Source of the DNA: Octopus sinensis
Lineage: Eukaryota
DNA length: 64,000 nt
Assembly: GCF_006345805.1 (NCBI RefSeq)
Contig: NW_021832231.1
Coordinates: 434,001 to 498,000, forward strand
Direction of reading: 5' to 3'
The position numbers and the translations under genes are program-made. Below are positions 4,571 through 56,200 of this stretch, piece by piece. Positions within the stretch are counted from its first letter, which is position 1. The number at the start of each line of letters is the position of its first letter. The notes under the pieces were generated by a model. That model saw nothing but the letters and a program-made list of their open reading frames with translations. It was not told where the DNA came from and did no database searches.

Positions 4571-5335
4571 CTAAAACAGCAAACTATTAAGACTGTTTGT
4601 GTAATACTCAACGTTGACTGTTGATGTGGAAATAGATATTCCTTTATTTGTAAAATATTCATAACTCTCCGGATCTGTCACCAAAAGACTGATCTCTCTC
4701 GGGTTTTTCAGTATTTCATTCACAGCCATAATGTGATTCATTTCGAGGATAGGAGTGTGGTTGATTTCAATTAAAATGTCGTTCTCTTTGATTTTGGCTT
4801 TGTCGGCTTGCGAATTTTCAGTCACATTACAGATGGAATGAAGCTGACCTGATTTGATTGTCGAAAGAGTGAACCCGTACTCTTCTTCATTTTCTAACAC
4901 AATCCGACACAATCGGACTGTCGGGGTTTTTAAAAATTTTTTTTCAGAAGGAACACTCTTTATTCGTAATTCTTCCAAGGTTTTCGCCTTTGATGAAAAT
5001 TTTGTAGGTGATTTCTTCAAAGATTTCACCTCTTTATGGGAGCCGACTATTTCGTCTCTATCTACCTCGAATATCAAATTCTTTCGACACTTCATTATTA
5101 TTTCTCGAATACGGTTTATAGACTTTTTAGTCACATTTTCGCCATTAATCTTGACAATTACGTCATCAACACGCAAGCCACTTTTCTCTCCAGCTGAATT
5201 TGGTCTAACATCAGAGATTATATGGGTTTTCGTATTAGGATTTGAATCAACCGAAAAGCCATAAATATTTTCAGGATGCTTCAGTGTTAATCTGAATTCA
5301 GACATTGAAATATATGTCATCAGAATACTATTCAT
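4571..5335 (-). CDS. Two-PDZ scaffold, NHERF1/PDZK1-like, single ORF of 254 aa
   Basis: Two PDZ domains (YGF..ISDVRPNSAGEKSGLRVDDVIVKING; YGFTL..VTENSQADKAKIKENDILIEIN..LLVTDPESYEYF). The post-PDZ LLVxDPE motif is NHERF-like. Confidence 0.8.
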   Translation of the reverse strand: MNSILMTYISMSEFRLTLKHPENIYGFSVDSNPNTKTHIISDVRPNSAGEKSGLRVDDVIVKINGENVTKKSINRIREIIMKCRKNLIFEVDRDEIVGSHKEVKSLKKSPTKFSSKAKTLEELRIKSVPSEKKFLKTPTVRLCRIVLENEEEYGFTLSTIKSGQLHSICNVTENSQADKAKIKENDILIEINHTPILEMNHIMAVNEILKNPREISLLVTDPESYEYFTNKGISISTSTVNVEYYTNSLNSLLF

Positions 5336-5887
5336 TAAAAAAATAACGAAAATAATAAATATTTAATTAAAAAAAATTTGTTTTTATCGTGGTTCAAGTT
5401 TTAATCTTTTGAAGATTTTTATCCATTGAATTTGCAATTCCTAACTTGCGGAGAGTTATAAAATAATAATGAAACAAAAATTGTATTTTTTTAAAATGAA
5501 ATTTAGCAAAAATAAAACTTTATTAATACACTTCAGAATGTAAAAACCAACAAGAGTCAATAATCCAGAGAATATTAAAACTAAGTTAGGGAATTCCAAA
5601 AACTGACGATACCAATGTTGTGTAATTGTGACAATTTTGAAGTGATTTGATCCACACTGAAGTAAAAAACCCGAAATAAGTGCGTAGAAATAGAAAAGAA
5701 TTGATTTCAATTTTAAGAATAAAGACACAAATACAATTTTCTGTATCCTTGAGAAACTATCACGTTTCTTACTGTAAAATATTTTTCCAGATATCAGATA
5801 AAAGACATTAAAATGCGTAGAAATTCTCAAAAGTGATACAGCCAATTATCTTTTGATTTTATAATCTAAATTAATATTTTATTTGCT

Positions 5888-6280
5888 CCCGTTTGAGTTC
5901 GGCAAGTCTCTGTTATGGGATGCGACGTGTTCAGAGACACTTTCTCGGAGCTCAACCTTCCTTCTTCAGCTGTCGAGCCTGGCTCAGTCTCTCGCAAAAC
6001 CGAGAAGATGAAGATTGGAAAGTACAAGGGCTCTCTGAACGGTATCTGTTCACTCCCATCGCCGTCGAGACTTCCGGCGTCATCGGCGAAAAGTCTCTTT
6101 CCTTCTAAAAAAGCTTGGCCGCATGATCTCCCATAAACGGGGAGACCCACGCGAGTCCAAGTGGCTTTTCGAAAGGATTTCCTTGGCCATAGTACGTGGA
6201 AACTGTGTTTCCATTTACGATGCCGGGAATTTAATTAGTTAATAACTATTTGTTAATTACATATAAAAAAAAAAAATTAA

Positions 6281-6317
<37 letters not shown>
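5888..6317 (+). mobile_element. CRE-clade retrotransposon, 5'-truncated, with poly(A) tail and 10-bp TSD
   Basis: PFEFGKSLLWDATCSDT..YLFTPIAVETSGVIGEKSL; poly(A) about 6265-6317; TTTATTTGCT at 5878-5887 and 6318-6327. Confidence 0.92.
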
Positions 6318-6320
<3 letters not shown>

Positions 6321-6662
6321 ATTTGCTAATCGGCGAGCTACTGAATTTAAATTCAAAAAATGGCTTTAATTTTCAGTTTAGTTCAGATAATGATAATTAT
6401 TACAAATATTAAAAAGAACTAGAAATTTTTTTTAAAGACTGGAATTTATATTATGAATGAAAAACAGTTTATTTTGTTAATCGGGTGAATTTTTGAGACT
6501 CAAAGGACTAGTCGAAAGATCGGGATTTTGTTTTTTAAAGTCGACACATTATTTTTCAATGGTATAATATTTACGATCTATATGATATTTTTTATGGATC
6601 ATCTCTTTTTATATGTACTACGACACAAGATTTTATTCTTAAAGACAGTATGGGCATTGTAA

Positions 6663-9600
6663 TTATTTTTCTAAACAAAAAGGGCATGTCCTTGCGTTCT
6701 GCAGTCGCAAAAATTCATACTCCTCAGTATTAAAAAACTAAAATAACACAATAATCAAACTCGCCAACATCTCTCACATACACTCACAGCGACTTGATCG
6801 ACCATACATCGATATAAAGTCCATTTCAAAGGGTACGGATTCCTGACAACAATCACGTCAGAAATATGGAGACTTCGCAAAACATCAACCCCCACTGTAA
6901 ATTTGTCACCATTCGAAATGTTCTAAAAAGAGATTTTAAACCAACCCCTTGAAAATGTAGGAGTGCACTGGAAAAGGGATCCTTCTCTGTTTTGTCTTCG
7001 ATGATAAGTTTTTCTTCCAAAATATCTAAAAAACAAACCTTCGTGACCATTTGTAGTGGTTGGTTTGAAGTTACTTTTAAGAAGTTTTATGAGCTCCTCG
7101 TTACTGATATCCTCACTGGGGGCAAATTCCACGAGAGGAAGAGCATCTGAGATTATTTACTTGAATAAATACCAAAATTATCAAAAGCATAAACAAAGCG
7201 ATATCCGCAAGAAATGCAGACAGATTGGTCGTTACATAAAATTGGATTTGTCGTGAGGCAAGTGAAACAGTTTATGAGGACGTCATTTTCGTCGGTGAGG
7301 GGGGCAGCGGAGACAGTCAGAAGTGTTCCCGTTATTTCTTTTTCTAATTGTGGTGACAAATTCATATTCAATAGTTGTTTGCAACAAAATCTCGACAAGT
7401 TATATGTTCCCAATTCAAGTCCAGTTTTAGCCATTATCGATAATAAAATACTTTTGTTATATATTGTAACAAATTAAAATTACATTTTGGATATTTTAAT
7501 GGATTTAGGCATTCTTTCAATCGCGTTATAAACATATCTTGCTCTGTTAAATAATTCAGTTGGTGAACATTCTAATGACGGATTAACCTAAAATCAGAAA
7601 ATAAACACTACTTACATCATGGAAGGCCAAGGGAATATAAGCGTAGAGAACATTGGCCATCTCCTTATATTCCTCATATTTTTTCAAAATTTCATTATTA
7701 TTAATATATTCTTTATTCTGTCGTGAAATGGCTCTAATAATATCCCCAGACATTTTATGGCAGAACAGTGAGGCCTTATCATAGTTCCCCAGCTCGCACT
7801 GCACCGAAACATAATCAGAAGATAAATTAAAAGCATCCTCGAACATTTCAGCTTCAAAAAAAGCTTTATATTAGGTCAGGAAACCAACAGTGGACTGCCT
7901 GCTCATATTTCCCCGTCCTTGTCAGATACGAGGCGTGGCTCTTGTAAATATAGTTTTTCTGTTCTGGATATTTGTCACCCAGGATGAACGCCTTAAATGT
8001 TAACTTGACTTGTAAACGTCATTCCACAGGTTTCCTTCAATACAGGCCATTACAGCTTTTTCGGTCAATTCAGCCTTAATAAAAACATCTGCTGAGTGAC
8101 GGAATTGTTCTAATTGGAGTAAATAGTCTCCACACAGTGTAAGGGGTTGAGTATCCTCGGGGTCCAAATCCCTCCCAAGTTGTATTAACCTAAGAATTGT
8201 ATCTTTAAGGGGTACATGTCCTTCCAGGAGTGTTCTCCAGCTATTTTAATGGCTTCCTCATAGTTGTTAGCTGCTTGATACAACTCTGCGGCAAGACGGG
8301 GGTTTCCTGTCACACGTGCATGTTTAGCCTCTCTTCCGGCAATAATTTTGGTTTGGGTAGGGTCAGTAGCCAGCAACTGGGATGATTAATCGGACTTACA
8401 CGTGCTTTCTGAAACATACCAACGTCCAAATAGATTTGTAGAGCCATTTGTTTTTGCCCCGCTTGTTCATACAGCTTAGCTGCCTCATCAAAGTTTCCCT
8501 GATAGGCCATTATTTTAGCCAGGACTGAACTATCGTGTGTTTTCCCCTAAAAATGAGGAGACTGAAATGACTTTAATGGAATGTATCAATTCAAGGTAGA
8601 GAATGTCTTCCAATTGAATGAACAATTGTCTTGCCAAGTCAAATTGGAGTTCTCTCATGAAGGCCAGTGCCAGACTGCGCTTGTCACACTCAGGAATGCC
8701 AATGCAGGCAGTTTCGTAGGCAGTTCTGTCATTACATTAGAGAATGGCACCTGTATTGTTTTTGTTCAAACATATAAAAGACCGCATCTGTCAACGGAAT
8801 TTGTTTGGACTCCAGCTCGACAGGAGTTTGGATATACAAAGTGCACCCAATAAATCCAGAAATGACCGAGTCGTCCTAAATTCGAAAAATCCCCAAAACA
8901 TTGATTTCTTGGTGACAGACCTGCCTTCCATCGACTAGGACGTACAAGTCCTGTTCTGTCGAATAAGCCAGCATGTTCCTACAGGTCAAATGCCATTTCA
9001 TGCTTATTGCACATTTATCCTAACATTGTGCAAAGAACATAACGAGACTTGAAATATAATATCTTCGCTGTCCAGATTATATACTGTTAGGAGTTTTTCT
9101 TTGTTTATGAGGGCCAGTCGATCACGGTGACTGTTCAGTTCTCCGGCAATTACAGGCAGTAGTTGGTTCTCTACCAAAACTCTAGAAAACTGGCTATCGA
9201 TGCAAATTTCATGCACCTAAGCTTATACTCCACCACGAATACCTGCCCATTTTCCAGTCCAACAATTAATAGTTCCCTCTTGGGACACCCTCCGGTCACG
9301 TCGACAAATGTTACTGTGCTAGGGAAATTCCAAGTTTTCAGGAGACTCCCACTTAAGGAACAAATCGATACTAAGCCATTCTAAAAGCGAGAATTATTTA
9401 TGAAAATTTGGACAGAAATTGAAACAAGAGTCGACGTGAGCAGGAATGCGGGCCTGATTGGACCCTCTAAAGGCAAGGAGGAAATTAGGTCGCAGGAGAT
9501 CTTATCGGAAAGTTCCAAGTCGGTCTGGTAAATGTAGATTTCCTTGGCCACAGCAATCTACGTTGATCAACCATCAAGAACTCCGAGTCTGTTTTTGTAG

Positions 9601-14014: not shown

Positions 14015-15306
14015 TTTTTTTTTGTTGACTTTTTGTTTTTTTTTAAACAAGAAAGAAATTAAAGATAGCTAAGTTAATTAAAGGCCTCACGAGACACCCG
14101 ACCAGCCTCGCGAATGGCGAAGCTGTTCCCTCGGATCACAGCAATCGACAGACGTTCCAGGAGCCAAGAAAACTCTCTTGGATCGTGACTAGTCCTTGAA
14201 ATCCGTCGACCGAGCGAGCGAAGGAAGCGGAGTGTCCGAACAGGTAGAATCCCAAATAAGGGACTTCCCCTGCTCGTAGGGGAAGGTGGACATGCCGTCA
14301 GGGCGTTTGCCATCCCCTCTATCCAATCCAACAGGTTCAAGGATTGAAATCGTGAACATTGCCTTAAATCCGAGTGACTTTACTGCTTCAATTTCCACGT
14401 GCCGAGGCATTCTCTCAGACGTCCGGATTACGGACAAATCAAATCTTACGATCCTCGGTGCCCCCATGGGGCCTTCTGCCCTCGAATGCTCACTCGCTGG
14501 AAAAATTTCCCACTTATCCAAAATGATCGACAAGCTTAAAGTCATCGAGCCTCATGTGGCTCTTTTCCTCCTCCGAAACCACTTTTCCGTCCCTAAGATC
14601 TTTTACACCCTAAGATGTGCACCCTGCTTTCAAAGAGGCGACCTTCTTTCCGACCTTGACAATATCCTCAGGCTCGGTACGAGCTCTCTTTGCAATCTGG
14701 CTTTCGACGATCCAGGCTGGACTCAGGCATCCCTGCCTGTGGGCTGGGGCGGCCTTGGCCTGAGATCCTATTCCGATCTTGCCCTCCCGGCATTCCTATC
14801 CGCCCATCACGCTTTTCGTACTCTCTCAGACATCGTTCTTAGAAACCTCCCCGAACGGAAATTGTCTGAAGATAACTCTGCTGCCCGTGGTCGGTGGGAG
14901 GCTCGGTTTGGTTCGAAGCTGCCCAATTCTCAATCTGTACAGCGTCAATGGGACGAAATCTCTTGTCAGGCAATCTTCGAAGGCCTGCTTCCTGTCTCCA
15001 ATCAACACCGTGCCGCTTGCCTCCGTGCAGGTCGCTGTGAAGGCAGCGGTGTCTGGTTAAAGGCTCTCCCTCTCCCTTCCATCGGGAACCTGTTGGACAA
15101 GGAATGCCTAAGAATTGCAATCTCCCTCCGTGTCGGGCTAAAAATCTGCCAGACCCACAAATGCCGTTGTGGGGGAACTGTTGACGAGTACGGTTTGCAT
15201 CCCCTCGCTTGCCGGCGGAGTGCCGGTCGTGCCCCCCGTCACAGTGAACTCAACTCAGTCATACAGAGAGCCCTCGCTTCAGCAGGCATCCCGTCAATCC
15301 TTAAAC
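14015..15306 (-). mobile_element. CRE-clade insertion with inverted 5' segment (twin-priming structure)
   Basis: The 3' part (SILEPVGLDRGDGKRPDG..WLLERLSIAVIRGN plus A-tail) is on the minus strand at 14347 to 14015. The upstream part (post-RT region, CKCGGTVDEYGLH..C zinc knuckle, RH..LN..ALASAGIPSIL) is on the plus strand at 14348-15306. Near-perfect TSD CTTATT(A/T)AAA at 14005 and 15307. Confidence 0.9.
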
Positions 15307-15967
15307 CTTATTTAAATTATTCAGGATTTTCGTTTTTTCAAGAATCAAATACATGTTCTTGTCAATTTTTTTAGAACATAAAACAATTTATTAGACATAT
15401 TTCTTTAAATGTAATTGTTATTTACTAGAAGTTAACTGTTCTTATCAATTAGATTACGCCCAATGTCGTATTTACGTATCAATTAGATGACGTATCAATT
15501 AGATTACTGTTCTTATCAATTAAATGCACTGGAAAAAAATGATTAAATTTATAAAGTCAATTTCAGATTTCATTATTATGTTTAGGATATATATCTAGCC
15601 TGGCGGATTGCCAGATGAAATTAAAAATTAAAAGTCCAGATGAAATTAGTTTAAATTAATGCGTTTGCTCTCAGGCGATTCTCCTCCTCTTCGAGGCAGA
15701 GCCAATCTCTTCGATGGACATATTCATCTATCACACAGAGCTTGCCTCTTCTGTGGTCGTCCTTAAGTTCGACTCAATGGCCACACTCGGGGAAGTTTCC
15801 TCCTTTGTTCCATTTTTAAACCGATCACTTTAATCAATTTTTTAACTATGTTTCCTTTTTTAATTCCTTGCACATATCGTTCGTTTTATTTCCTATATTA
15901 TTCGTCAAATCTGGAAATTTGCGGTTTTGTGTGTTTAAGAACATTTCGATTATTCTAATTGAACGAA

Positions 15968-18420: not shown

Positions 18421-19658
18421 TCAGGGAGGACAGAGAGGACAAACATTGAGTGATTGATGGAGAAGAACATTACAATCATAGCAGAAGGAGGCAGCACACG
18501 TAGGGCATTGATACATCTCCTCATGCTTACCGGAATGCAGACATCCTCCACAACTGACATCCTCATTTACTGCCTTAAAATTCGGCAATAAAAATAGTTG
18601 GTGATGAGAAACAGCCAAATGCGTAGAGGAGACGAGAGTCAGGTCACAAACCTTACACTGTCGAGGAACTCCACACACAGGAAAGAGACAACGAGGACAA
18701 AGTGGGTGGGGAATCGACTCCCGACTGAGAATTGAAGACACAACAACAACCACACTGTACACACCACAGCCATCCGTTCTTGAGGGAAGCCTGTGAATAA
18801 ACAAACAGTGACTACCAATCTCAATCAAGAAAGGATTGCCACTCTCGGGAACAGAACAAGTCAAAGCAGGCTCAATAAACTTGTAAAACAGCATTCCCAA
18901 ATGTTCCCTATCAATGGCCACGTCGTATGTGCCTGACTCACAATTCCACAACAACCTCCAGTCCTATCGGCCAAATACTGGAATATCCGAGTGTGTGCAG
19001 ATACGCCAATAACAGAACACCGAATATTCATTTCCCGTGCATTCTCAATTGTTTCTTCAATATTTCCACCGTCAATGAGTGTCAGACTGCCGTGGATCAC
19101 CAACACTTCCCGTGTCCAGTGTTTTGGCAGATTCCAGGGTACAACAAAATTATTACTCAAGATAATGGATTGCCAGACCAAGTCCATTTTGAAGGGAAAA
19201 TTCCCCACCGTCGACGTGTAGTTTTGATAGGGCCAGGAAGAGGTCTCGGGGATTCTCGGTCAGGCCTTGTCGGACTTCCCCGACCTTTTCTCCCAGGGAA
19301 ATCAGACCGAGGCGACCGAGGGGGTTCTTTGTGAAATATTCCTCCATGGCCTTCTCAAGCACGTGCTTTACAGAATGTAGACGGGAAGGACGCATGTCAG
19401 TGTCCTCCATGGAGGAAGAACAGTCCATCAATATAAAACAGGATCGAAACTGGGTTTATTTAGGATTATCTACAGTTCCACCCCGGAGTCGAATTAGTGG
19501 CCCGTTCTCGTGTAGTTTAATGTATTCTTTTCTGACTAGTTGGTGTATCTGGTCTTCTTCCTTTTCTTTTGTTATGTCCCTTGCTCATTTGATGCCTTTT
19601 TTATTTACCATGATTTTTCGTAGGCATTTTCCCACTCGTATTTGTCGGCCTCGTGCAT
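18421..19658 (-). CDS. GTF2H2: TFIIH p44 subunit (Ssl1)
   Basis: MHEADKYEWENAYEKSW; ILMDCSSSMEDTDMRPSRL..EEYFTKNPL; GEFSLQNGL; TREVLVIHGSL; CPRC..CKVCDLTLVSSTHLAVSHHQL; C-terminal C4C4 with CPLC. Confidence 0.95.
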
Positions 19659-22150: not shown

Positions 22151-22731
22151 TGCGCTTAAAGAAAAATTCATTACTGCAACCGGCTAATTGAAAAACAGAT
22201 TGACCAGAAAACTGTTTTTTGTGGTCTAATAAAAATACTTTTCTGGAACGGAACCTGGTTTGACACTTTTTTGTCTACGAAAATCACCGACTCGATATGG
22301 TGCATAGCATTTTTAAAATTGAAATTTGAGAAGCTAAAGTAGTATCAACGGCAATTTAATCGTGTTTTTTAACTGAATTAGTAAAAGTTTTTAAACGACG
22401 AACGGTACAAATCGGCTCTTTTTTGACGATGAAAAAACTCGTTGTTTTTCCAACAAATTTCTTGATTCATTTTACGAAGGAATGTTGCTTTAATTCAAAG
22501 AGCGCCTCTCTTGTAAAACTTTTAAAATCGTGATTCTCATTTAGTTTTGTTTTATACGCCCATAAAAAAGTAAAATAATAAATTAAAACAATTTAATTTT
22601 GCACAAAAATATTATCTTTTATCTATATTTGTGGTAATTAAAACACCTAATTTAGATAAACAATTATCAAATGCCGAAAAAAATTAGAGAAATTAACGTC
22701 CAGAGATTAAAGAGAAAATAATTAAGTTGAT

Positions 22732-24433
22732 CTAATTTTGAACGATACCAGGTTCATTGGTTTCGACCAATGCAATTCCAGGATTAAAATTTGCTGGACA
22801 TTCATTTTGTTCTATGCAATATTCAATTGCCCTTTGGTTAATGTCAAAATCATCGTTTGAAAACTGTCTCTAAAAATAATTTGCTTAAATAGACTACCCA
22901 GTATTCAAGCCCTTGAATTTTATTAGTTATGCAGTAATCGCAAGTGGGAAATTCATCATTCACCTAAAATATATAGTTTAATAATGTTTATTTTTTACAT
23001 TATTGTTTTTATCATTAATTTCGTCAGTATTTGTGCTTCTATCTTCTTGTTCACGATTGATTTGGTCCTCATTTTGTTCATTACGCATAACTTCATAATT
23101 TGCAGGACATTCGCTTTGTTCAATGCAATATTCAATTGCCCTCTGCCTGGTGTCAAATTTATCGTTTGAAAACTTTCTCTAAAAATAATTTTTGAATAAA
23201 TTACCCAGTATTCAAGCCCTTGAATTTTGTTAATTACGCAGTATTCGCAGGTGGGAAATTCATTATTTTCCTGAAATATAGTTTTAACAGTCAATTTTTC
23301 TTACATCATTGTTTTGATTCCTTCTATCTTCCCTATCTCTCCAATCACTTCGGTCACGATCTCTTCTGTCGTCCCTATCTCTCCTATCATTTCGGTCACG
23401 ATCCCGTCGGTCGTCTCTATCTCTCCTGTTATTACGGTCACGATCCCGTCGGTCGTCTCTATCTCTTCTATCATTTCGGTCACGATCTCTTCGGTCGTCT
23501 CTATCTCTTCTATCATTTTGGTCACGATCTCTTCGATCGTCTCTATCTCTTCTATCATTTCGGTCACGATCTCTTCGGTCTTCATTTTGTTCGTACGGCT
23601 CTCATCATAATTCTCTGGGCATTCTTTTTGTTCTATGCAATACTCAATTGCCCTTTCGTTAGTGTCAAAATCGTCGTTTGAATACTGTCTCTAAAAATAA
23701 TTCTTTTAGATAATTTACCCAATATTCAAGTCCCCTAATTTTATTAGTCACACAATAGTCACAAGTGGGAAATTCAATATTTTCCTATAATATAGTTGTA
23801 AAAGTCCATGATTTATACATTATTATTTCGATCTCTTCGGTCGTCCCTATCTCTCCTGTCATTGCGGTTACGATCTCTTCGGTCGTCTCTATCTCTTCTA
23901 TCATTGTGGTCACGATCTCTTCGGTCGTCTCTATCTCTTCTATCATTGCGGTCACGATCTCTTCGGTCGTCTCTATCTCTTCTGTCATTGCGGTCACGAT
24001 CTCTTCGGTCGTCTCTATCTCTTCTATCATTGTGCTCACGATCTCTTCGGTCGTCTCTATCTCTTCTGTCATTGCGGTCACGATCTCTTCGGTCGTTATT
24101 CTGTTCGTTACGTCTCTCATCATAATTTTCTGGACATTCTCCTTGTTCTATGCAATACTGAGTTGCTCGTTGTTCAGGATCGAAATTACTGATGGAATAC
24201 GCATTCTATAAATTATTGCTGGTTAAATTACTTGATATCTTAGTCCAATGGTTTTGTATTTTATACAATAGGAACATGAATTGAATTGGTCTCTGTCATT
24301 ATTTCGATTATCCCGCCTTCGATTATTTCTAGCCTGTTGAATATAATTTTAATTTCTAAACCTGTAGCAGATGAATACTCAATAGAATCCCTTTAAATTT
24401 TATTTAAAAAATAAAACAGATTATCGCAATCAT
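22732..24433 (-). CDS. Novel predicted secreted protein: signal peptide, four CxxC..Cx5C modules and Arg/Asp repeat linkers
   Basis: Manual splicing with 9 GT-AG introns of about 26-35 nt gives MIAIIWILLSIHLLQA-RNNRR.., then modules [EF]PTCDYC.TNKI.GLEYW/RQ.SNDDFD.N.RAIEYCIEQ.ECP.N[YF]. One apparent 1-nt frameshift near 23594. Confidence 0.75.
23330..23580 (-). repeat. 42-bp coding minisatellite, about 6 units (DRRDRDRNDRRDRD)
   Basis: Unit gaccgaagagatcgtgaccgaaatgatagaagagatagagac repeated on the minus strand. Confidence 0.9.
23830..24095 (-). repeat. 42-bp coding minisatellite, about 6 units (DRRDRDRNDRRDRD)
   Basis: Unit gaccgaagagatcgtgaccgcaatga(t/c)agaagagatagagac repeated on the minus strand. 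Confidence 0.9.
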
Positions 24434-25257
24434 TTTATTAACACTAATTCTGATATTGAAAATTTATTATAATTCGGTTTACCAATATAAAAAAATAGTT
24501 TGTAATACAATTTTATTTTAAGTATTTATATAGTAAATATTTGTATCTCTAGTCAGATATAAGTGAGTGTAAAATGTATAATAATTACATATTTTATAAG
24601 TGGAAAAATGTATCAAAATGTGAATTTAATAAAAAAACGGTTTTTGTATAAACATTATATGCTATAGTAATACTATCTATATGTTTTTACAACTTGTAGA
24701 TACTTTTTTTGATTTATAAAAATTTAATCAGGAATTCAAAATTAAACAAGTATGAAAAATTATTTTGGATGATTTATTAATTGTTAAATGCTCGTTCAAC
24801 TATATGTGAGTTCTCTTCCAACTAGATTCTTTCACATGTTCCAACTATTTTTACCAATTTTGGTGGACCTGTTTCTTCTCGCTCGAGCAATCTTTTCTTC
24901 TTATATACATTGCGGAAATGATTTGTTAATCCTATACATTCATATTTGATTTAGTTCCATAAATCGGTTTGTTTATGCTTTTATTTGGTCCAATGTCTAT
25001 AGAATTCAACAGTTTATTAAGTGAAATAGAATTTCCACTTAATAGGGAAAATTTGGGAATTCAAAAATCATTCTGCCTTTACCCCTACCCCGTTCAAAAC
25101 TAAATAAAACTCAATTCTTGTTTGAAACTTGCACTCTTTGACAATTAAAATCGTAATCGCACCAAATTAGAGCTAATGGTTTTTAATTTTGGGTTACTAT
25201 TTCGCAAATCCATTTTCTATTATAAATCTTTAAAAAAGGAATTTGGTAATTAGCTAG

Positions 25258-26239: not shown

Positions 26240-26730
26240 TTAGTATTTAATTAGCAGCAGAGGATAGGATGGAATGGCAATTCCCACGCAAGATGGCTAT
26301 TGATATGCGTTGGAAAAGCCATGTCCGTTCCCGATGATCATTTCTTCTTCTGCTTGCCAAATCCCCCAGTTTAATAAGGAATTTTTTAGTTCTGGGACCG
26401 AGGACTCCCGATGTCTCCACTGCGATCGGGGCAAAGATATGGCGGTGAGATAATGCACTGTATTTCTTGATTTTTAGCGTTTCGGCCAGGTTGGCTGCGG
26501 AGTCCGGCTCTGAAGCTGACGTCAAGATGTTCCCGGCGGAGAAAGTATCCGTGCAAGTGGCGTCCCAGATGAGAGACTTGCCATTTTCGAATGGGAAGGT
26601 CGTTAGCCATCAGGACGTTTACCATCCTCCCGAGCCAGCCCGACCGGTTCCAGCTGTGAAGGGAATCCGGCAGTTTCCAGAGTCCGCTTGACTATGTCGT
26701 TCAGAGCCGTATGTCGAGGGAAGCCCATTC
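26240..26730 (-). mobile_element. CRE-clade retrotransposon, 5'-truncated
   Basis: [73 protein letters not shown]. Confidence 0.9.
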
Positions 26731-26985: not shown

Positions 26986-27888
26986 TTACGTCCATATTTT
27001 ATGTTTGAAATTTTCATTGGTTGGTTTGATCTTCAAACTCTTCCGAACTGCCTCAATCGGCGTCTCCCAATGTTCCTCGACGTACAAATTCATAACTGGC
27101 TTAGCCGTCCTCCCAGCTTCCACAGCGTAAGCCAAAAGTCTCCTTCTGAAGATATCCCCATGTCTTACCAAATCTCCGAAACAAAATCCTACTTATTTCC
27201 AAGCCGAAATCCCCCAAAAAAGGCGGCCAAATAATTCATTGGAAGACCAACATTGAGTGCCTCAAACCATTTGACTGCAACTTCTCCCAACATTGTGGTA
27301 GGCATCCCCAAAAGTGTATGGATGATATCATGTAGTTGTCGATAACGAGTTATTACGTAACCAAGTTCAGGGTCGGCCACAAATCTAGAAAGTGGTCGAT
27401 CATCAGGAGAATATCCCTAAAATATATATTTTACTTAAACATAATATTGCATGAATGTTGCGTAGTGGTGACCTAAAGATTGTCTGTCCAGAGATAAGAG
27501 ATATTTCAAATCTATAGTTTGGGTGTTTAAAAGTGGTTTATTTCTATTTTAAATGAATAAAATACAGCACATAATAATACGCCGTCCATCGGGATCACGA
27601 AGCATTCTATCACGGATAACCTTAAGAGCGTTGAGGCCTGAGGTCTCTCCAAACACGGCCAATAGATCTATTTTAATAGAGAGGGTGAGGTACACCGTTT
27701 CGTGAAGGATCAAACTGTAGGAAGATAGGAGAGGCAATATTTAATAAGAGACGCTGGAATCGGGTCGTCTGTATATGATTAGAGGCTATAGAGTCTTTTA
27801 ATGTTTAAATATATATTTATAAACCATATGTTGTAGTGGTTAAATATCTAATTTGTTTTACGAATCTTTGTCGAATATGCACACACAT
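26986..27888 (-). CDS. COQ4: Ubiquinone biosynthesis protein COQ4
   Basis: Arg-rich mitochondrial presequence [16 protein letters not shown]; [24 protein letters not shown]; [29 protein letters not shown]; [10 protein letters not shown]. Confidence 0.93.
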
Positions 27889-28930: not shown

Positions 28931-29455
28931 GATCGTCAGAGCTCTGAAGGCTGCAGGCTTCCCAGCACAGCTTGAACCAGTGGGTCTCGATCGAGGTGAT
29001 GGAAAGAGACCTGACGGATGACTCTTTTCCCTTTCAACTCCGGACGATCTTTGGTCTGGGACGCAACTTGCGTCGATACTTACTCAAGCACGAATCTCCT
29101 TAAATCGGTTCAGACACCTGGAGCAGCTGCCTCAATCGCGGAAAACCTTAAAACCAAAAAATATTCCTTCCTCGGGGACCGCTACAGATTCACCCCTGTT
29201 GCGGCTGAGTCATCAGAGCAGTTGGCCCAGCGACTGCCGAGTTCTTGCGCGAACTCGGAAGAATGCTCGCCACAAAGAAAATGATCCTCGTGAAGGAGTA
29301 TGGCTAAGACAAAGGATCGGAATAGCCATACTCCGAGGGACTCGCTTTCCATACAGGCAGCGGCTTCCTCAATTGATTTCTCAAATCAATCTCTTCTCTT
29401 TCGATATAATAACTTTTATCAGTAAATTGCAAAAAAAAAAAAAAAAAAAAAAAAA
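28931..29455 (+). mobile_element. CRE-clade retrotransposon, 5'-truncated, with poly(A) tail and TSD
   Basis: IVRALKAAGFPAQLEPVGLDRGDGKRPDG..LVWDATCVDT..WLRQRIGIAILRG; A25 tail; (AAAA)TCTTGTTT at 28919-28930 and 29452-29463. Confidence 0.92.
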
Positions 29456-29904
29456 TCTTGTTTTCACTTCGATTTTTTTGGCGATCCATGATTTTCTCAG
29501 TTTGTTTGATGTGGCGTATATAAGTATTTTCCTCTTTGCAATATCATTTGCGTCACCAAAGAGGGTGCCTAATTTATTAGTTTTGCGCTAGAGTTCTTAG
29601 GTCCAATCTTTTCTTCTAAACAGTTTTGTGATTTCTGTTTTTGTTTACTTTTAATGACTAGTCTGCCTTTTCTGAATTGAAGCTTTTTGCTCTTCTTTAT
29701 TTTTAATCAATTTAATTAATTTTTTTGATAAATAATTGTTAAAAATACAGATTATTATTTGGAAAGCTAACCTATTATTGACCGGCTCTAAATAAAAAAA
29801 ACTAACTCAATATTAATCTGAAAATCAATTTTAAATAATTTAATCTGTTAATTGATTAATTTTTGACGCAAAATAAAACTCAAACTATTCATTACAAATA
29901 AAAT

Positions 29905-41637: not shown

Positions 41638-44351
41638 TTATGCTCCCCAAACTTTTGGACTTAGAAAAAAGTTTTTTTCTAATTTATCCAATCGACATTT
41701 TCTCCCAGTTTTTCCCTCAATTTCACAGGACCTCGCAGTTGGTGTGACGACATTTGGAACATTCCAGGTCTCAGAAAAACGTGCTTTGACATAGTTTTTT
41801 GTAGATATTTTCAATTTCGGAGTTAAGTTTGGTAAGGAAACGTCGTAAAAATATGGAAGACACAAATTGCATGTTTTTGAATTGTTTCGCATTAAATGAG
41901 ACTTTGCGTGTGCTATCGCCATTAGGTCATGTTCGTCGACGGGGTTTCTCATCTCAAAACGTTGGTTTGACAAATTTTTTTTGGGCTGAGATTTTCTTGT
42001 CGATTTTTCGTTAGGAAGTTGTTGGAGAATGTCGATTTTTAATTCATGTTTTTTCAATAATTTTTTATTTAAAATTGTAAATTTCTTTTTTTTGTCGTTT
42101 CCGATTAATTTTCCAATCGGCGACTTTCGTTTTCTCGTTTTTCTACCTGAAAATTTCATTGAGACATTTTCAGTTTTATTACTACAAGGGACCGAAATGG
42201 AGAATGGTTGATTGTTCCCGCCACCATTTTTGATCCCCGATGAACCCTGGTTAAGAGAAATCAATTTTTCCACATTTTTGTTTGCCTTGTTGCAATTTTC
42301 ATTATGTTTTTCTGAATTGTCATTTTGTTTATTTGGTGACTCGATCTTTAATGGAGAGATCCGCTTCACCGGTTTAGGGATTCTGAGAGGGACCCCATCA
42401 ACGACCAAGTTCGATCCAATGTATTGAGGGGTTGGAACGCACATTCCCTTATAAAGTATCTCAAAGTCCCCGACACTGGCTGTTCTATTAGCCTTTCGAT
42501 CGCAAATGACTAAATTCTCCAAATATGATTGAAAACCTTTAATGGTGTCGTCGAGGACCGCAGAACACATTGATTGAGTCACGGACGTGCTCGAGTCCAT
42601 GCTGGGACTTGAATTGATCTCAATCAGCCAAGGATTAAGCTGTTCGTCGATTATAAAATCTGCTCCATAAAGCTCGAAGGAATTCTATTTATCGAAGACA
42701 CATTGAAACCTTTCGTTGATCGACGGACTCTTGTGCACAGAGAACAGCACAGAGAATGTACTTTTTCATGTTCGGATAAATGTGGTCCCTCCAATGATGT
42801 GGGTGTCCAATTGACCTTTCGACTAATAGTTCAAAAATACTCCAAATATTGCTGGAACCGACCACTCGTCCACATGTTCTCCTCGGGGAGGAGGTCGGAC
42901 CTTCCTCGGTCGTTTGAATAGTTCCTTTGGATGGCGTTGTTGTTGAGGTGTATTGACCTGTCATAGACACACATGAAAACGCGTGAAAGTCGTGCAAAGA
43001 GAATCTCTGAGAACAAAATCTGAGGTAACTGTGCTTGTATATCCAAATAGTCAGAGGGTTCCAATCAGTGACCAAAAACCATTGACGAATGTCGAATTTT
43101 GTGCGGTGAATTAAAAGAGGTCGTTCGATGTATTTTTGTACTACAAAACGTGCTTTTTGCTTGCTGTATGTCGTGTCAGAAACACGCATTATGTCTGACA
43201 GTTTATCACAAATGAAGATCCCTAAGGATAAGGAACTCGAGTCGACCTCGACCACGAGACCTCGCCGCGGGCTTCACAATCCAAATATTTCGAGTTCCGT
43301 CGATTCTTTCTTGTGGACATAACTCAAAAACTTGTTTTAAAAGTTGTGCACAGTATTCTGCTTTTTCCATTGGCAGGAAGACATCTTTTAATCTGAAATG
43401 TAATATTTTGAACTACTTTAACTTTGCGCAGTAATTATGGAAGGACGACCACCTTTCAGGGGAGGGGACAGTCTATGGGAGTGGGGGACGGTACCAAACT
43501 GATAGAGGATCATCAATATCTTGATTTGTTTTGAATTTTAAAAAGTTTTCGACAGTTTTTATAGCAAAAAAAATATTTTCTGAGACAAAAGTTGTTTCCG
43601 AGTGTTCTACACGTTGTGTCAATATTTTGAGAAGTGAAACACATGCAGTCAAATTATAGTCCTCTGCAAATAAAAATATTAAAAAACGGGTGAATGCAGT
43701 TAAATCATCTTCGTCAAACAGTCGGTAAGCCCGAGGATATATCGCGGCCTCATCTACATCAGAATACCACCCAAGAAGCTTGAGATGCTGCAACAGTCCT
43801 GCCTACAACAATCCGAATTGAACTACTTTTGTAGTTAAAGACCAGGATCCTCGAAAATGGTTAATAATTTGGTGTTTCTCAACAAGTCGATAATCCACGG
43901 CATTTGAGCGGAGAGTCCAAATGAGGTTTGAAATTGTGTTTCGAAGAATCCGGGACTTGATTTTATTTTTAAAATTAAACTGTAATTTTGCATTGCTGAA
44001 TTTGATCTTGAGCATTGTTTTCTGAATCATTGATTTCATCTAACAAATAATGAACTAAAATTTGCCAAGCAACCATTTCCCTCGTCGTCCTCATCAGAAA
44101 GGGAGTTTTCGTCTTTTTGTTTAGGAAGTTTTGAGGGTCCGACGGCCTTCTCAAGCCATCCACGAGACACAAGTGACCTTCTTATAATGTCATAGCCACC
44201 AAAAATAGAAAAAACTTTTCCTGACTAAAAAGTAAGAGAAAATAGCCACTTTGACTATCGAATCGACATATGCCTTAATTTGTTTGATATCTTGAATTTT
44301 TAGTTTTTTGTAAGATTCTTTAATGTGAATTTTGTTTGTAGGCAAATCCAT
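41638..44351 (-). CDS. TTLL3: Tubulin monoglycylase (TTLL3/TTLL8)
   Basis: VFSIFGGYDIIRRSLVSRGWLEK; INHFRGSWSLTTK; IDGTRNIWIVKPAARSRGRG; VVQKYIERPLLIHRTKFDIRQWFLVTDWNPL; FELYGADF. Confidence 0.92.
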
Positions 44352-44648: not shown

Positions 44649-47185
<2,537 letters not shown>

Positions 47186-49799: not shown

Positions 49800-51900
49800 G
49801 CAGTGACATTGGGTTTTCACGAAAAGATCCTTTGTGTTGTGGAAAATAATTTTCCATTGTGTGCGTAAAATATGACCATTAAAATCATCATCTAAGAATA
49901 TCTATTGACAGCGGTTTTGAGCCACACCTTTTTTATAGTGCCGAGTTTGTTATTGTTCCTGGCAAATGTATATTTTCCTTAGCAGGTTTAGGTTGTTCAA
50001 TTCCAAGTTGATTATTCCCCATGCCGACACGTTATATGGCAGAATGGGACCACTAATGTGTTATTGATCCTTGTGGTAAACTTCTTTGTCGACAGATCTT
50101 CAGAAACTAGTTATATGTTGAAATCAAGACATGACGCAACGTGCTGCTACTGTTACGACGTGATTTATCACTACTCAAGCATGTGTATGAGATATTCTCT
50201 CAAAATCTCTTTGCCATTTCGTCTGTCCCCCTAGCGGACCGCAGAGTGACCCGGAAGATACCTGCGTGTAAGGTCAGAGGTGGAGTACTGACTGGTATCA
50301 ACAGGGCCATTGCTCACCATTTGTTGAGTAAGCGGCCAGAGTCTCTAGAGGAGATTTCTTTTTTTTGTATGTGGCTCAAGTTACCTACGAGGAATTGACG
50401 GTTAAGCCCAGACAACCTAGTAAGTGGAAGGACAACATCGCTGCAAAGATTTCTTTGTGCGAGGTAGAGCTGGAAGCACTGATTGGGCACAAGACTCCTC
50501 CCTTGGTGCGTACTTCACCGACACAGGGCCGCTAAGTGGGACCTGAATGAAATCGTTGGGGCAAAGAATGAGGTAGAAGAGTCTATTCTTGTTTACAAGA
50601 AGAAGTGTATAGCGTCCCCGGATAGTATCCCAGGCTGGTTGTGCACTGGTGTTACTTATTTGATACCAAAAGTGTCCTGTCCAGCGTCTCCGGCAGATTA
50701 TCGTCCGATAACCTGCATGCCCTCCTTATACAAGCTGATGACCAAGTTGGTGGCTAATGAGGTCAGAGGATTTGTTGAGGTTAATGGCATTCTATCCGAG
50801 AATCAGCTCGGAACTGTGAGGAATTGCCAGGGAGCAAAGGAGCAGGCATTGATCAACAAGTGTCTTTCTAACGCTTACGGAAACTCACTTATGTCCATGT
50901 GGGTGGATGTTAAGAAGGCATTTGACTCCGTTGATCATGCATATCTCATCGAATGTCTACACAACGGAGGCGGGCATCAATGTTATGCAAAACTCATTTA
51001 AATGAAAGGAATTTATTCCATGCGTTGAATGAATATGCAATATCATTGCTTAACTATTATGTAGGTATTGTGGAGTTTGAGCCACAGGAGTACGATGATA
51101 TGGATTGTATGATCCGTAGAGTACTGATGAGAATTAGCTATGAGAATTAGCTTTGTATGAGAATTAGCTATCCTGTCCCAATATCAATTATTTTTGATAT
51201 TTGTAATGATTGCAGCTAGTTTCATAGCCTCATATCTGATTAAACCACTAATCTCCCAGTTTTTAGCTTTTTGATTGCTATTGAGGTTTCATAAACGATT
51301 ATTAAAGAGGTTAATACCCTTATAGCCTATGAGTAATGTCCTGACTCATTGTCCTAATTTATCAATCTATAATAGTAATTATCGATTAAGAATTGTGTTT
51401 GCAGGTTTTGTTGTGTCGATATCCAATGTTATTTTTGATTACTTTAACTGAATGCTATAAATTTTATTTTTACCACAAGTTTGTGGTCACCGTTTGTTTT
51501 TAGTCCTCCATATGACCGTAAATTGCCAAGTAGATGTTTATAAGCACGTATTAGAATATAGTCGATCTGATTGTAGGTTGTATATTTCTGCTAAGTCGTT
51601 TCTGACTCCAACTTAGGTAGTTTAAAACACCGTGTTGCATAAAAATATATCTACGCAGGTGTAGAACTGTATCAAAACAGTTTCAGGAGTACTTCGGCTG
51701 TTTGTTTCATGAGAGTTTTACTGATTCGGGCTTTTTCGTTTTACAAATCCAGTTCCCAGCAATGAAGCATAAATATAGATGAGCTGACTGCAGTAAGAGC
51801 TCGGGAACAACATTACGGTTTAGATCCACGTTACAGGCATTTCATTTTTGAGACTATTTACGCAATAGTTTTTAATTTTCTAGCATACGGGCTGTACAGG
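49800..51900 (-). mobile_element. Degenerate RTE-like non-LTR element (APE to C-terminus), interrupted by an R4-like piece
   Basis: APE motif YNQIDYILIR..NLRSYGG..DHKLVV (about 51480-51580); AIKKLKTGR (about 51260); C-terminal TLVVPILPYNVSAWG..TITNSAL*KRCG..GHILR (about 49880-50060). Confidence 0.6.
50140..51150 (+). mobile_element. R4/NeSL-like reverse transcriptase fragment
   Basis: IPGWLCTGVTYLIPK..DYRPITCMPSLYKLMT..NQLGTVRNCQGAKEQALINK..WVDVKKAFDSVDH; post-RT RNLFHALNEYAISLLNYYVG. Confidence 0.85.
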
Positions 51901-53489: not shown

Positions 53490-56200
53490 TTTTAAATTTT
53501 ATGAACACATGTCTGTCCCGCAAGAAATTTTAATATCCATAAAGAAACCCAAGAGACCGGCTGGGTCTGTTGAGAACCTCAAACCAATCATCCTTATCAC
53601 GCCTTTACGGAAACTACTGTCCTTGATTGTCCTTGATAGCATTTCTCCTACTGTAGACAAATACCTGTCCCTGAGCCAAAGTCGATTCAAAAGAGGAGAA
53701 TCCACTGCAAGCGTCGTATGGACACAAATGAATATTTTTCAAGACACGGAAATACCAGAAGGCTGCTAGAAATTAATCTCTTCTGAACGTTTTCTGCTGC
53801 AAGGTGAGGAAAGCTACTAAATTTCCTTGGGACCTTACTGGACGAGGACTGTCTGAGGATGATACGTACTTGCCAACGCCGAACTATGAATTTGAGGTGA
53901 TTTAGAGCGGTCCCTCAAATTTAAAGCACATGTTGATGCCGCAAAAGGCAACTTGTTGCAAATACTATTTGTTCTTTGGGAACCGCAGAGATTTAAGGGC
54001 GAAAATTGGACCGAGTTCGATTACAGAACTGATTTACGAAGATAACGTACACTTTGTTTGGAAGACATCAAAGAAATTAGAAAATTGCTCAATCATACTC
54101 CTGGATTATTTGGGAAATTGTTTCTGAAAGTGAAAAAATAAAAAACGGAGCTCACAGCATTAAAAAAACCAATTGACAGAGGATAAAAGGAAAAGAACCA
54201 AAAAATTGGCTAACTTTCCTGATGATTTTATTTATTTGACCGCCAAGAACACGATAAAAATTAAACAAAAGTCACGTGATCCCGATTCACTCGACCAGGG
54301 ACTTCATCTTCGCTCGGTGATCTTTCCACGAGGCCACAAAGATCGCACCGGGCGACAGGTCGTTTTTGACGGGGCATTTGCTGACGGACCGAGCTTGATA
54401 AGATTTTCCAAAGAAGCTGGACCGGGGCGTTCGTTATCGTGTGATCAACGATCGGTTTATCTGAAGGCCCTTTGTTGGGCTTCCTCGATTCGCTTCCTGT
54501 TAGACCACGATAACCGCGGACCCCATAATCCGCAGGCGTAGGCAATAAATGGTTCGAAGTACTGGCGGTAGATATTCGCCAGTACCGGGTGTGACCCGTT
54601 TTTCCATAATCCGGATAGGGTTCTAAAAATGTTCCATTTTTTTCGCATTTGCGAAGGAGGTTGTCTGCATGTAAGGAGAAACAGAGGTGCATGTCGAGGG
54701 TTACCCCTAAGACCGTCTGACTCCTGTAGAAGGGTACGGATATGTTGTTCAGCTTTAAGTCGACTGAAGTCCTTCCCAATCTTTTGTCCGAAGTGAAGAG
54801 GGACGTGGCCGACTTTGTCGCGTTTACCACGAGCCGGTTGTCCGTCAGCCATAGGTTCAGCCGATCCAAGTTAGCTGGATGTCCCGATCTCGTGAGGCTA
54901 ATACGATGTCGTCCGCATATGAGAGGACAATTTCATTATTGTCGAGGGAGGGTGGGAGATCTTCCAGGAATACGTTGAAAAGGGCCGGGGATCCCTGAAG
55001 TACTCCGTTGAGTAGGAGACAAGATGTTGACTTCAGACTCTCGAGGCACACCCTTTCTTTTCAAAAAGTTGTTGATCCATATTTTAAGTTTCGGAGGAAA
55101 TTCAGATTTGAATATCTTTCTTGATAGAAGCTTCCTTGAGACAGAATAGAAGGTTTTGTGAATGTCAACGGAGCAAAGCACGGTCTTTTGGTGCCTCGGT
55201 TTGTTTGCAAAACCGGTACAGATGAAATTCGACAATGATTGTAAGTACGAAGAAGTGGACTTCGCCTTCTTAAACCCATGTTGAAAAAGTCTTTCGGATA
55301 AGAATTCTTCTATTCTCCCAAGAAACAGTCTTTCCAGGATTTTTGACATCGAACATAACAGAAAAATCGGTCTGAAAGATGCCGAGTTGCCTCTTGGTCT
55401 TTTAGGCTTCAGTATCGGCCTTATTAGGGCCTGTTTCCATATTGACGGAATCACATTGGGGTTGATTGAGTAGTTGAAGATAGCCGTTAGGAACGTGACT
55501 CCTTCGACATCAAGATTTTTTAATAGAATGACCGGAATTTTGTCCGGGTCGTGAGAGTACGATGATTTTGTGGAGTGCAAGGTATCCTCCACCTTCTTTA
55601 TTGAGAGGAGAGGTTCCGCCCGTTTCTTCAGGCTTTTGTTAGAGGGGAGTGAACCTGATGATTTGAAACATGTTCAGCAAAGTGAAATGCTTTCGATACT
55701 TAAAAGATTAAAGCTAAAAGACATTTCAACACATATAAAAGTGCGTCTATACAATAGATTTATTTGGCCCATTTTGCTATATCACCAGGGAACGTCGGGT
55801 TACATAAAAATGTACTGAAAACCTAAATCTATTTCAGAGGAAACAACTAAAGTTCCTATACGGTATCCGGAGGTGATCAGAAACCAGAACATATACGCTA
55901 CGTGAAAATCTGAGTGTTTGAGAACCACTATAAAGAATACTCAACGGGAACTACTTGGAGATATCTTAAAAATAGATCATGGTGCTTATGAAAATAACAT
56001 TTTGAAATCGTATTTCAGGCTCCTTTCGAGGCAGACCACGTACAACCCTGCCACTATCCATACAAAATGACCTAAAAATGCTGGAATACGACTAGAAAAT
56101 GCTGATGAGTTTTTGAGAAATCGCAATCTTAAGCAGAAAATTAAGGTGACTAATGAAGAAAATCATCCGGGATGCTGCACAAGCGACGATAAAAACTTAA
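53490..56200 (+). mobile_element. Degenerate RTE-like element split by a nested insertion
   Basis: ENLKPIILITPLRKLLSLIVL..LSLSQSRFKRGESTASVVWT; after the insert, IKVRLYNRFIWPILLY..VIRNQNIY..LLGDIL. Confidence 0.7.
54229..55653 (-). mobile_element. I/Jockey-group non-LTR element, 5'-truncated, 11-bp TSD
   Basis: RT motifs WKQALIRPILKP..SFRPIFLLCSMSKILER..QHGF..GVLQGS..YADD; (TAAA)n tail; CCTGATGATTT at 54218-54228 and 55654-55664. Confidence 0.88.

Follow-up and report, generated by a model that had tools for sequence, protein, structure and literature searches.

The described proteins that most resemble the one reported here in its charged regions are those with Arg-enriched mixed-charge domains, such as U1-70K, NELF-E and CPSF6 and the fungal SPA-5, of which the human examples are nuclear. 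Such domains have been searched for with criteria of >60 amino acids (aa) and a charged fraction of 0.7, natural examples typically being net positive, and pure arginine-aspartate (RD) repeats of 40-60 dipeptides assemble into fibrils in vitro at a concentration of 5 uM with no crowding agent added, stay in solution at high salt, and lose fibril formation when Arg is replaced by Lys (10.1101/771592). Among small cysteine-bearing modules, a close comparison is with saposin-like domains (SapB_1/SapB_2), which are secreted helical domains of ~80 aa with six cysteines and four or five helices, arranged in tandem in one precursor. Another is with the plant alpha-hairpinins, which are two-disulfide helix-loop-helix peptides made from multi-module precursors. 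Here we describe a gene on the minus strand, positions 24433-22732, of a 64,000-nucleotide (nt) window, the whole stretch of DNA that was analysed, in which four small cysteine modules are joined by three linkers, two of them ~92-aa RD tracts. The window corresponds to positions 434001-498000 of record GCA_006345805.1 VCDQ01002408.1, filed as Octopus sinensis; all coordinates given below are window positions, to which 434000 is added to obtain record positions (456732-458433 for the gene).

The general kind of protein is familiar, being a lineage-specific secreted parasite protein in which small Cys modules are combined with low-complexity linkers, while the module itself is, as judged from sequence comparisons, new. 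Our preferred reading, which we hold with modest confidence, is that this is a lineage-restricted gene of a dicyemid-type genome, which would encode a secreted, modular protein of bead-and-spacer design with functional RD tracts.

Gene structure and reading frame

The minus strand of 22650-24520 was read in all three frames, and the modules and Arg/Asp tracts were found to be split among frames by short, stop-bearing stretches that start with GT and end with AG. With these removed, ten exons are joined by nine GT..AG introns of 27, 28, 26, 34, 28, 34, 26, 35 and 28 nt, running from an ATG start at 24433 to a TAG stop that ends at 22732, in agreement with the first-pass annotation, which had proposed a hidden gene spliced from nine tiny introns. 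The same annotation had observed that the list of open reading frames (ORFs) shows only wrong-frame products at this locus, which is true, and is caused by a lack of start codons in the right-frame exons. The features of the locus are as follows, all on the minus strand:

24418..24433 (-), exon 1, 16 nt: the ATG and the start of the hydrophobic N-terminus (MIAII and the first base of W); the only ATG that reaches exon 3 in frame with introns <=100 nt
24391..24417 (-), intron 1, 27 nt, GT..AG, phase 1
24362..24390 (-), exon 2, 29 nt: remainder of the hydrophobic core (WILLSIHLLQ)
24334..24361 (-), intron 2, 28 nt, GT..AG, phase 0
24232..24333 (-), exon 3, 102 nt: basic, Asn-rich start of the mature protein and first half of module 1 (..FNSCSYCIKYKTIGLRYQ)
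24206..24231 (-), intron 3, 26 nt: intra-module intron of module 1
23819..24205 (-), exon 4, 387 nt: second half of module 1 and RD linker 1
23829..24096 (-), RD array 1, 42-nt unit x 6.4, coding for DRRDRDRNDRRDRD (Tandem Repeats Finder)
23785..23818 (-), intron 4, 34 nt: ahead of module 2
23719..23784 (-), exon 5, 66 nt: first half of module 2
23691..23718 (-), intron 5, 28 nt: intra-module intron of module 2
23305..23690 (-), exon 6, 386 nt as assembled: second half of module 2 and RD linker 2; one base shorter than exon 4
23333..23580 (-), RD array 2, 42-nt unit x 5.9: read in the TEEIVT frame as assembled, with substitutions that fit the RD frame
23271..23304 (-), intron 6, 34 nt: ahead of module 3
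23205..23270 (-), exon 7, 66 nt: first half of module 3
23179..23204 (-), intron 7, 26 nt: intra-module intron of module 3
22999..23178 (-), exon 8, 180 nt: second half of module 3 and the acidic, Asn-rich linker 3
22964..22998 (-), intron 8, 35 nt: ahead of module 4
22898..22963 (-), exon 9, 66 nt: first half of module 4
22870..22897 (-), intron 9, 28 nt: intra-module intron of module 4
22732..22869 (-), exon 10, 138 nt: second half of module 4, then a tail of 17 aa and the TAG stop (22734-22732)

From exon 3 onwards all exon lengths are multiples of three, with the sole exception of exon 6, which is broken. Exons 4 and 6 are paralogues that align end to end with a single one-base gap (387 versus 386 nt), and this alignment places the indel that had been flagged near 23594 just after position 23595, in the short stretch that separates module 2 from RD array 2, which is kept in units 1 and 3 as R-N-E-Q-N. 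When the break is read through, with X at the break, the product is 478 aa long. The introns had been described as phase 0 within and ahead of the modules; given read-through, this applies to all introns but the first, yet for introns 6-9 it applies only with read-through. The mature protein would comprise 462 aa, with a computed mass of ~58 kDa and an isoelectric point of ~5.1, and contain 23% Arg, 20% Asp and 13% Asn, together with 16 cysteines.

Comparison of the two RD tracts reveals 33 nucleotide differences in 276 nt, 21 of which fall at third positions of the RD frame. Differing codons in this frame are synonymous in 18 cases and non-synonymous in 11, while the ratios are 2:27 and 6:23 in the other two frames of the same strand and 6:23, 13:16 and 2:27 on the opposite strand, such that the synonymous excess is confined to the RD frame among all six; the assignment of the RD reading frame made in the first-pass annotation is thereby upheld. 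By the Nei-Gojobori method the linkers give a dS of 0.57 and a dN of 0.05 (dN/dS ~0.09), and modules 2-4 give dN/dS values of 0.10-0.45. These comparisons show that purifying selection has acted over a substantial period on the modules and on the RD reading of both linkers. Between 23275 and 24211, five of the six frames on the two strands are open through the RD arrays (RD, TEEIVT, SISSVV, LRSRSL and GHDLFGRLY). We considered the plus-strand ORFs as candidate genes and rejected them on account of the non-synonymous excess in their frames.

It might be argued that the locus contains no gene, with the open frames representing by-products of the tandem repeats and the introns chance pairs of GT and AG; the five open frames, and the lack of an annotation-derived protein from the locus in databases, could be read in this way. 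However, four non-repetitive modules with 22 invariant residues and dN/dS <0.5, homologous intron positions, exon lengths that after exon 2 are multiples of three except in the broken exon, and a synonymous excess specific to one frame all speak against it, and we find this explanation barely credible. We consider the existence of a real, unannotated protein-coding gene to be confirmed at the level of sequence analysis.

Cysteine modules and charged linkers

The four Cys modules proposed in the first-pass annotation are recovered as units of about 45-50 aa with the pattern CX2C-X28-CX5C, which align over 59 columns and share 22 invariant positions (F5, C8, Y10, C11, K15, G18, L19, Y21, S26, F30, D31, R35, A36, Y39, C40, I41, E42, Q43, E45, C46, P47 and N49), the cysteines C8, C11, C40 and C46 being present in all four. 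A homologous intron of 26-28 nt interrupts every module after GL[RE]Y[QW], and another, of 34-35 nt, stands ahead of each of modules 2-4. Because these introns align across units, the duplicated unit was a genomic exon-intron-exon piece, in line with the earlier suggestion of exon-pair duplication. AlphaFold2, run on the four-module alignment, returned a model with a predicted local distance difference test score (pLDDT) of 76.4 and a predicted template modelling score of 0.63, with helices at 2-23, 32-42 and 50-58. The first of these bears C8 and C11 and is followed by a loop, the second ends near C40, with C46 and P47 in the loop just after it, and the third is the beginning of the linker. 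The same hairpin appears in both modules of a 216-aa single-sequence model that spans module 1, linker 1 and module 2. Two cysteines spaced three residues apart on one helix, opposite two at the end of its partner, have the geometry expected of a hairpin with a double staple. From these models we infer that the module is a two-helix hairpin, in which the CxxC of helix 1 would be stapled by two putative disulfides to the Cx5C that ends helix 2, with a nested pairing of C8-C46 and C11-C40.

Searches for relatives of this module were uniformly negative. Pfam returned only sub-threshold noise for the whole product, for two modules and for one module, with no match for the single module at E <= 10; the noise included one weak 4Fe-4S line (E = 0.043-5.6, below its cut-off) and no match to a zinc-finger family. 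Nothing below E = 0.5 was found in a sequence search of the PDB, no match to modules 3-4 was found in a word-based search of 5.8 billion proteins, and a four-module profile yielded 0 matches at E <= 0.001 against 1.84 billion protein representatives. Back-translated pattern scans of viral, metagenome and GTDB contigs detected no relative, and tblastn of the modules within the 64-kb window detected only the four known copies. Foldseek, which had been suggested for a single modelled module, gave no match in the PDB or BFVD at E <= 0.001. Taken over Pfam, PDB sequences, Foldseek, the 1.84 billion representatives and the viral, metagenome and GTDB contigs, the module is without a match, and the description of the family as previously undescribed stands.

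A likeness to saposins had been noted in the outer cysteines, and in this limited sense it is correct. In an alignment of human saposins A-D the outer pairs are C4-x2-C7 and C73-x5-C79, compared with C8-x2-C11 and C40-x5-C46 in the module; in both, a helix carries the N-terminal CxxC, the C-terminal Cx5C is found at and past the end of the last helix, and both occur as tandem domains of one secreted precursor (secretion here being predicted). In contrast, the module has four cysteines rather than six, is ~45-50 aa rather than ~80 aa in length, and has two predicted helices rather than four or five. We tried saposin homology as a candidate and rejected it, since hhalign gave a probability of 0.2% against saposins A-D and 0.3% against versions with the middle deleted, and Pfam gave no match. 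Consequently, the resemblance is not supported beyond the spacing of the cysteines. Plant alpha-hairpinins share with the module a predicted helix-loop-helix, two cysteines per arm and several modules per precursor, yet their pattern is CX3C...CX3C rather than CX2C...CX5C, and the present protein is of animal source, has no sequence relation to them and offers no evidence of cleavage into peptides. A broader parallel exists with the lineage-specific, secreted, Cys-rich tandem-module proteins of parasites, which similarly combine a predicted signal peptide, small repeated Cys modules, low-complexity linkers and an absence of homologues outside their lineage; this is a general category rather than a family, and neither this module nor the RD linker occurs in any of its members that we found.

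The earlier estimate of about six repeat copies in each of linkers 1 and 2 agrees well with Tandem Repeats Finder, which reports 42-nt arrays at 23829-24096 (6.4 copies, 94% matches) and 23333-23580 (5.9 copies, 90% matches), and linker 3 is indeed acidic and Asn-rich (31 aa). The 42-nt unit encodes DRRDRDRNDRRDRD. Each of the two RD tracts is 92 aa long and 86-87% charged, with positive and negative fractions of 0.46-0.47 and 0.40 respectively, no Lys, a net charge per residue of +0.054 to +0.065 and a kappa of 0.005-0.008, so that charges are almost perfectly mixed. In length, charged fraction, use of Arg without Lys and slight net positive charge they agree with the criteria for, and the typical charge of, the Arg-enriched mixed-charge domains, and their length is within the range over which pure RD repeats condense into fibrils (10.1101/771592). 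They differ from such domains in that the present protein starts with a hydrophobic, signal-like peptide whereas the human examples are nuclear, and in that a fixed 14-mer that includes RR and DD steps is repeated here in place of a strict dipeptide. The suggestion in the first-pass annotation that the tracts might self-assemble has a precedent, given that pure RD repeats of at least 40 dipeptides form fibrils (10.1101/771592).

Three competing physical readings of the RD tracts may be distinguished. In one the tract is an expanded coil. Well-mixed polyampholytes are expected, from charge-patterning theory, to adopt this state. In another it would form a single long helix, a rod of ~14 nm, even though Asp is a poor helix former. 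AlphaFold2 indeed models residues 64-155 as one helix, with a pLDDT of 69-84 over most of the tract, and opposite charges outnumber like charges at i/i+4 (47 to 20). A predicted uninterrupted helix of ~92 residues and an i/i+4 preference of this kind recall single alpha-helix (ER/K) spacers; however, those spacers are Glu-based rather than Asp-based and have dense opposite-charge pairs among Glu, Lys and Arg at both i/i+3 and i/i+4, whereas like charges dominate here at i/i+3 (47 like, 21 opposite). The remaining possibility, suggested by analogy with the pure RD repeats, is arginine-driven self-association. Since the constraint on the linkers is strong (dN/dS ~0.09), the RD tracts seem to do more than provide spacing.

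Origin of the contig and proposed role of the product

Within this region, short introns are not peculiar to the gene. Introns are 26-35 nt long in this gene and 23-28 nt long in MCM3 of the same window (44772-46818, plus strand), which contains at least six such GT..AG introns; removal of the 25-nt intron at 46158-46182, with the join after ANPVYGR, produces a gapless alignment to solved MCM3 structures (E = 1.6e-91), to which the spliced ATPase core is highly similar. Mean GC content of the window is 36.2%, and it carries metazoan housekeeping genes, namely MCM3 and, by Pfam assignment, a tubulin-tyrosine-ligase (TTL)-family ligase, COQ4, TFIIH p44/Ssl1 and a PDZ protein, in addition to RVT_1 fragments. 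The PDZ protein matches only itself among 5.8 billion proteins, while the TFIIH p44-like protein has a single match, 38% identical and from a read-archive assembly, and no identical annotated protein. A true octopus gene would be expected to match near-identical orthologues in other sequenced octopuses. Comparable values have been reported from dicyemids: the median intron of a Dicyema sp. is 27 bp (PMC6543705), and the genome of D. japonicum, collected from O. sinensis, has 36.7% GC, 49% repeats with many long interspersed nuclear elements (LINEs) and a scaffold N50 of 1 Mb (PMC6736024). Among 51 metazoan genomes, introns this short were found only in myxobolid myxozoans and D. japonicum (PMC13644364). 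A flatworm origin, to which intron size and GC content had pointed at first, was rejected in view of the identity of the record, and a ciliate origin because TAA and TAG must both serve as stops and the genes nearby are those of a metazoan.

On the basis of the 23-35-nt introns, ~36% GC, LINE fragments and lack of cephalopod orthologues, the contig is probably dicyemid DNA carried into the host assembly. Our literature search found no report of dicyemid DNA in GCA_006345805. A contig of 1,033,805 bp in the reference octopus assembly seems to be parasite DNA, the genes of which were either missed, or mis-joined and labelled as octopus, and a dicyemid source with tiny introns would explain why the present gene is hidden from annotation.

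Exon 3 itself lacks an ATG, and a stop codon closes it immediately upstream. For the 5' end, all ATGs in roughly 1 kb of upstream sequence were combined with as many as four GT..AG introns of 18-100 nt; only two of the resulting models reach exon 3 in frame, both of which start at 24433 and are hydrophobic (MIAIIWILLSIHLLQA|RNN... or MIAIILFICYRNN...). The N-terminus IAIIWILLSIHLL contains a 13-residue hydrophobic core (residues 2-14, mean Kyte-Doolittle 2.66), which falls within the 7-15 residues typical of classical signal peptides, and the three highest 19-residue hydropathy windows are all N-terminal, no other hydrophobic segment occurring in the protein. It is plausible, from these sequence properties, that the 16-residue hydrophobic N-terminus is a signal peptide and that the product is secreted; a role at the host interface, as the first-pass annotation had ventured, would plausibly fit a dicyemid origin.

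Under our preferred reading the product would be secreted via this peptide, and its four small, disulfide-locked hairpins would act as binding or capping units. The two RD tracts may hold these modules apart, as solvated or helical spacers, or may self-associate in an arginine-driven and salt-sensitive manner, with the outcome in either case being a multivalent extracellular scaffold or a self-assembling material. The parasite would probably use such a protein in the renal sac of its host, as a secreted coat or matrix or as granule material, and candidate sites in dicyemids include the surface coat, attachment material in the crypts of the renal appendages, and a component of larval granules. 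A more ambitious and unlikely version would make this the first extracellular RD domain, part of a salt-switchable gel or fibre that the parasite secretes, condensed in a granule, which might swell or dissolve in urine of sea-water strength or template a charged deposit of mineral or phytate, and would be cross-linked or capped by a new two-disulfide hairpin with saposin-like spacing. If expressed and secreted, the protein would provide a new small cysteine-stapled domain, the first RD mixed-charge tract, so far a hallmark of nuclear speckles, that works outside the cell, and an initial molecular lead to the substances that dicyemids release into the kidney of cephalopods; no secreted dicyemid proteins are described in the dicyemid literature that we searched.

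Several observations weigh against this reading in one or other of its parts. The dicyemid assignment is made by genome traits rather than by a match to dicyemid sequence. The signal-peptide call rests on two micro-exons of 16 and 29 nt, and, whereas classical signal peptides have a basic n-region and small residues at -1 and -3, the N-terminus has no basic residue before its core, and has Ala at -1 but Leu at -3 (LQA|R). Sequence does not discriminate between disulfide formation and metal binding by the modules. The long helix predicted for the RD tract may be a modelling habit, and the net score of its helix charge pattern (1, versus a shuffle mean of 0.8) is no better than that of shuffled sequences. 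Renal fluid should be close to sea water in strength, which would weaken charge-driven assembly. As assembled, the ORF is broken at residue ~233, passes into the TEEIVT frame, which is open across the whole of linker 2, and meets a stop in exon 7 at residue 340. Moreover, indel errors do not appear to be frequent here, because frame correction is needed at none of the seven junctions of MCM3 in the same window.

The one-base shortfall of exon 6 reflects either an assembly error or a very recent inactivation, since a break in modules and linkers that have been under purifying selection for so long, the RD reading of both linkers included, must be young or artefactual. It is possible that the shortfall is real and the gene recently dead, the record representing a pseudogene of recent origin that once encoded the secreted modular protein, or else a null allele carried by the population that was sequenced. 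The break is present in the record, the seven uncorrected MCM3 junctions suggest that assembly indels are uncommon, and the modules occur in none of the 1.84 billion representatives, which include proteins predicted from public sequencing-run assemblies. Nevertheless, no damage is seen downstream, where modules 3 and 4, the splice sites and the stop codon are all intact, and a dN/dS of ~0.09 for the RD frame of linker 2, at a dS of 0.57, means that any inactivation was very recent. In addition, the octopus assembly is said, in the title of a paper, to be PacBio-based, and single-base indels are a typical error of that platform, which favours an indel error in exon 6; a dead gene thus has in our view a minor, although appreciable, chance of being the right explanation. 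We think it highly improbable, in comparison, that the assembled sequence is correct and used as it stands, giving either two modules and an acidic TEEIV-type tail in a protein of 340 aa or four modules by means of an alternative donor in exon 6. The TEEIVT frame is indeed open through linker 2, and eight GT sites within exon 6, most of them at ATC|GTGACC, which recurs with the repeat, could be spliced in frame to exon 7, with four-module products of 390-463 aa. However, such products require introns of 78-297 nt, in contrast to 23-35 nt for all others seen here, and linker 2 has substitutions that agree with the RD frame (18:11) rather than with the TEEIVT frame (6:23).

Other alternatives accept the gene but alter the fate of its product. 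Were the 5' micro-exon model wrong, the protein could be nuclear, with RD tracts that act as mixed-charge domains targeting it to speckles and CxxC...Cx5C modules that bind zinc. The first-pass annotation had described RD tracts as normally a nuclear feature, and this was borne out: in the literature that uses the term, every RD-repeat protein found is nuclear, with no secreted or extracellular example, which also counts against our preferred reading. Four-cysteine CxxC...CxnC patterns are furthermore common metal sites, and there is no N-x-S/T sequon among the about 60 Asn of the product. On the other hand, with exon 3 lacking an ATG and closed upstream, introns of <=100 nt allow only models with a hydrophobic N-terminus; no zinc-finger family attains a meaningful Pfam score, the single 4Fe-4S line being below its cut-off; and the AlphaFold2 models have C8, C11 and C40 within helices and C46 in the loop that follows helix 2, rather than in the knuckle turns of a C4 zinc finger or ribbon. 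We therefore regard a nuclear protein as very unlikely. A polyprotein precursor, cut at Arg-Arg pairs of the linkers into four ~50-aa, disulfide-rich helical peptides with signalling or antimicrobial functions, as in plant alpha-hairpinin or nematode polyproteins, is suggested by the four near-identical, small tandem modules, the predicted helix-loop-helix with its four Cys, and a total of 29 dibasic sites. Yet no R-x-[KR]-R site exists in the product, the dibasic pairs are spread over the whole linker instead of flanking the modules, and purifying selection as strong as that on the linker would be unexpected for a discarded spacer, leaving this option decidedly doubtful.

Other features of the window

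The gene is flanked by a TFIIH p44/Ssl1-like gene at 18421-19455 (minus strand; Ssl1, VWA_2 and C1_4 matches) and by a COQ4 exon at 27189-27416 (minus strand, E = 3.8e-29). Exact look-up of ten window ORFs in a collection of 15 billion proteins found none of them present. The PDZ exon at 4574-5290 shows 100% identity to a protein held in public databases as 'NHE-RF3-like [Octopus sinensis]' (P0001, 311 aa), which spans 4574-8510 on the minus strand and joins exons of 35-40 aa at 8391-8510 and 7483-7587 (these two with a weak IFT122-TPR match) to the two-PDZ exon across introns of ~0.8 and 2.2 kb. This public protein appears to be a chimera, in which two genes were fused by a gene finder unable to handle tiny introns. 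In the TTL-family gene at 41638-43273 (minus strand), a gap of four bases separates two long ORFs that are in different frames and are presumably joined by another tiny intron.

Fragments of non-LTR (long terminal repeat) retrotransposons (RVT_1) and related ORFs occur at 14280-15374 and 50483-51001 on the plus strand, at 54261-55673 and 26247-26691 on the minus strand, and at 29015-29591 on the plus strand, in stretches of higher GC content that reach 40-45% in several 2-kb bins. The ORFs at 26247-26609 and 29022-29591 have a common ...QRI.IAILRG.. motif, and the second of them contains a run of Lys codons in an A-rich tract. Finally, a run of 53 A at 6265-6317, which overlaps an AT-rich 20-mer repeat at 6255-6316, may be the tail of a retroelement.

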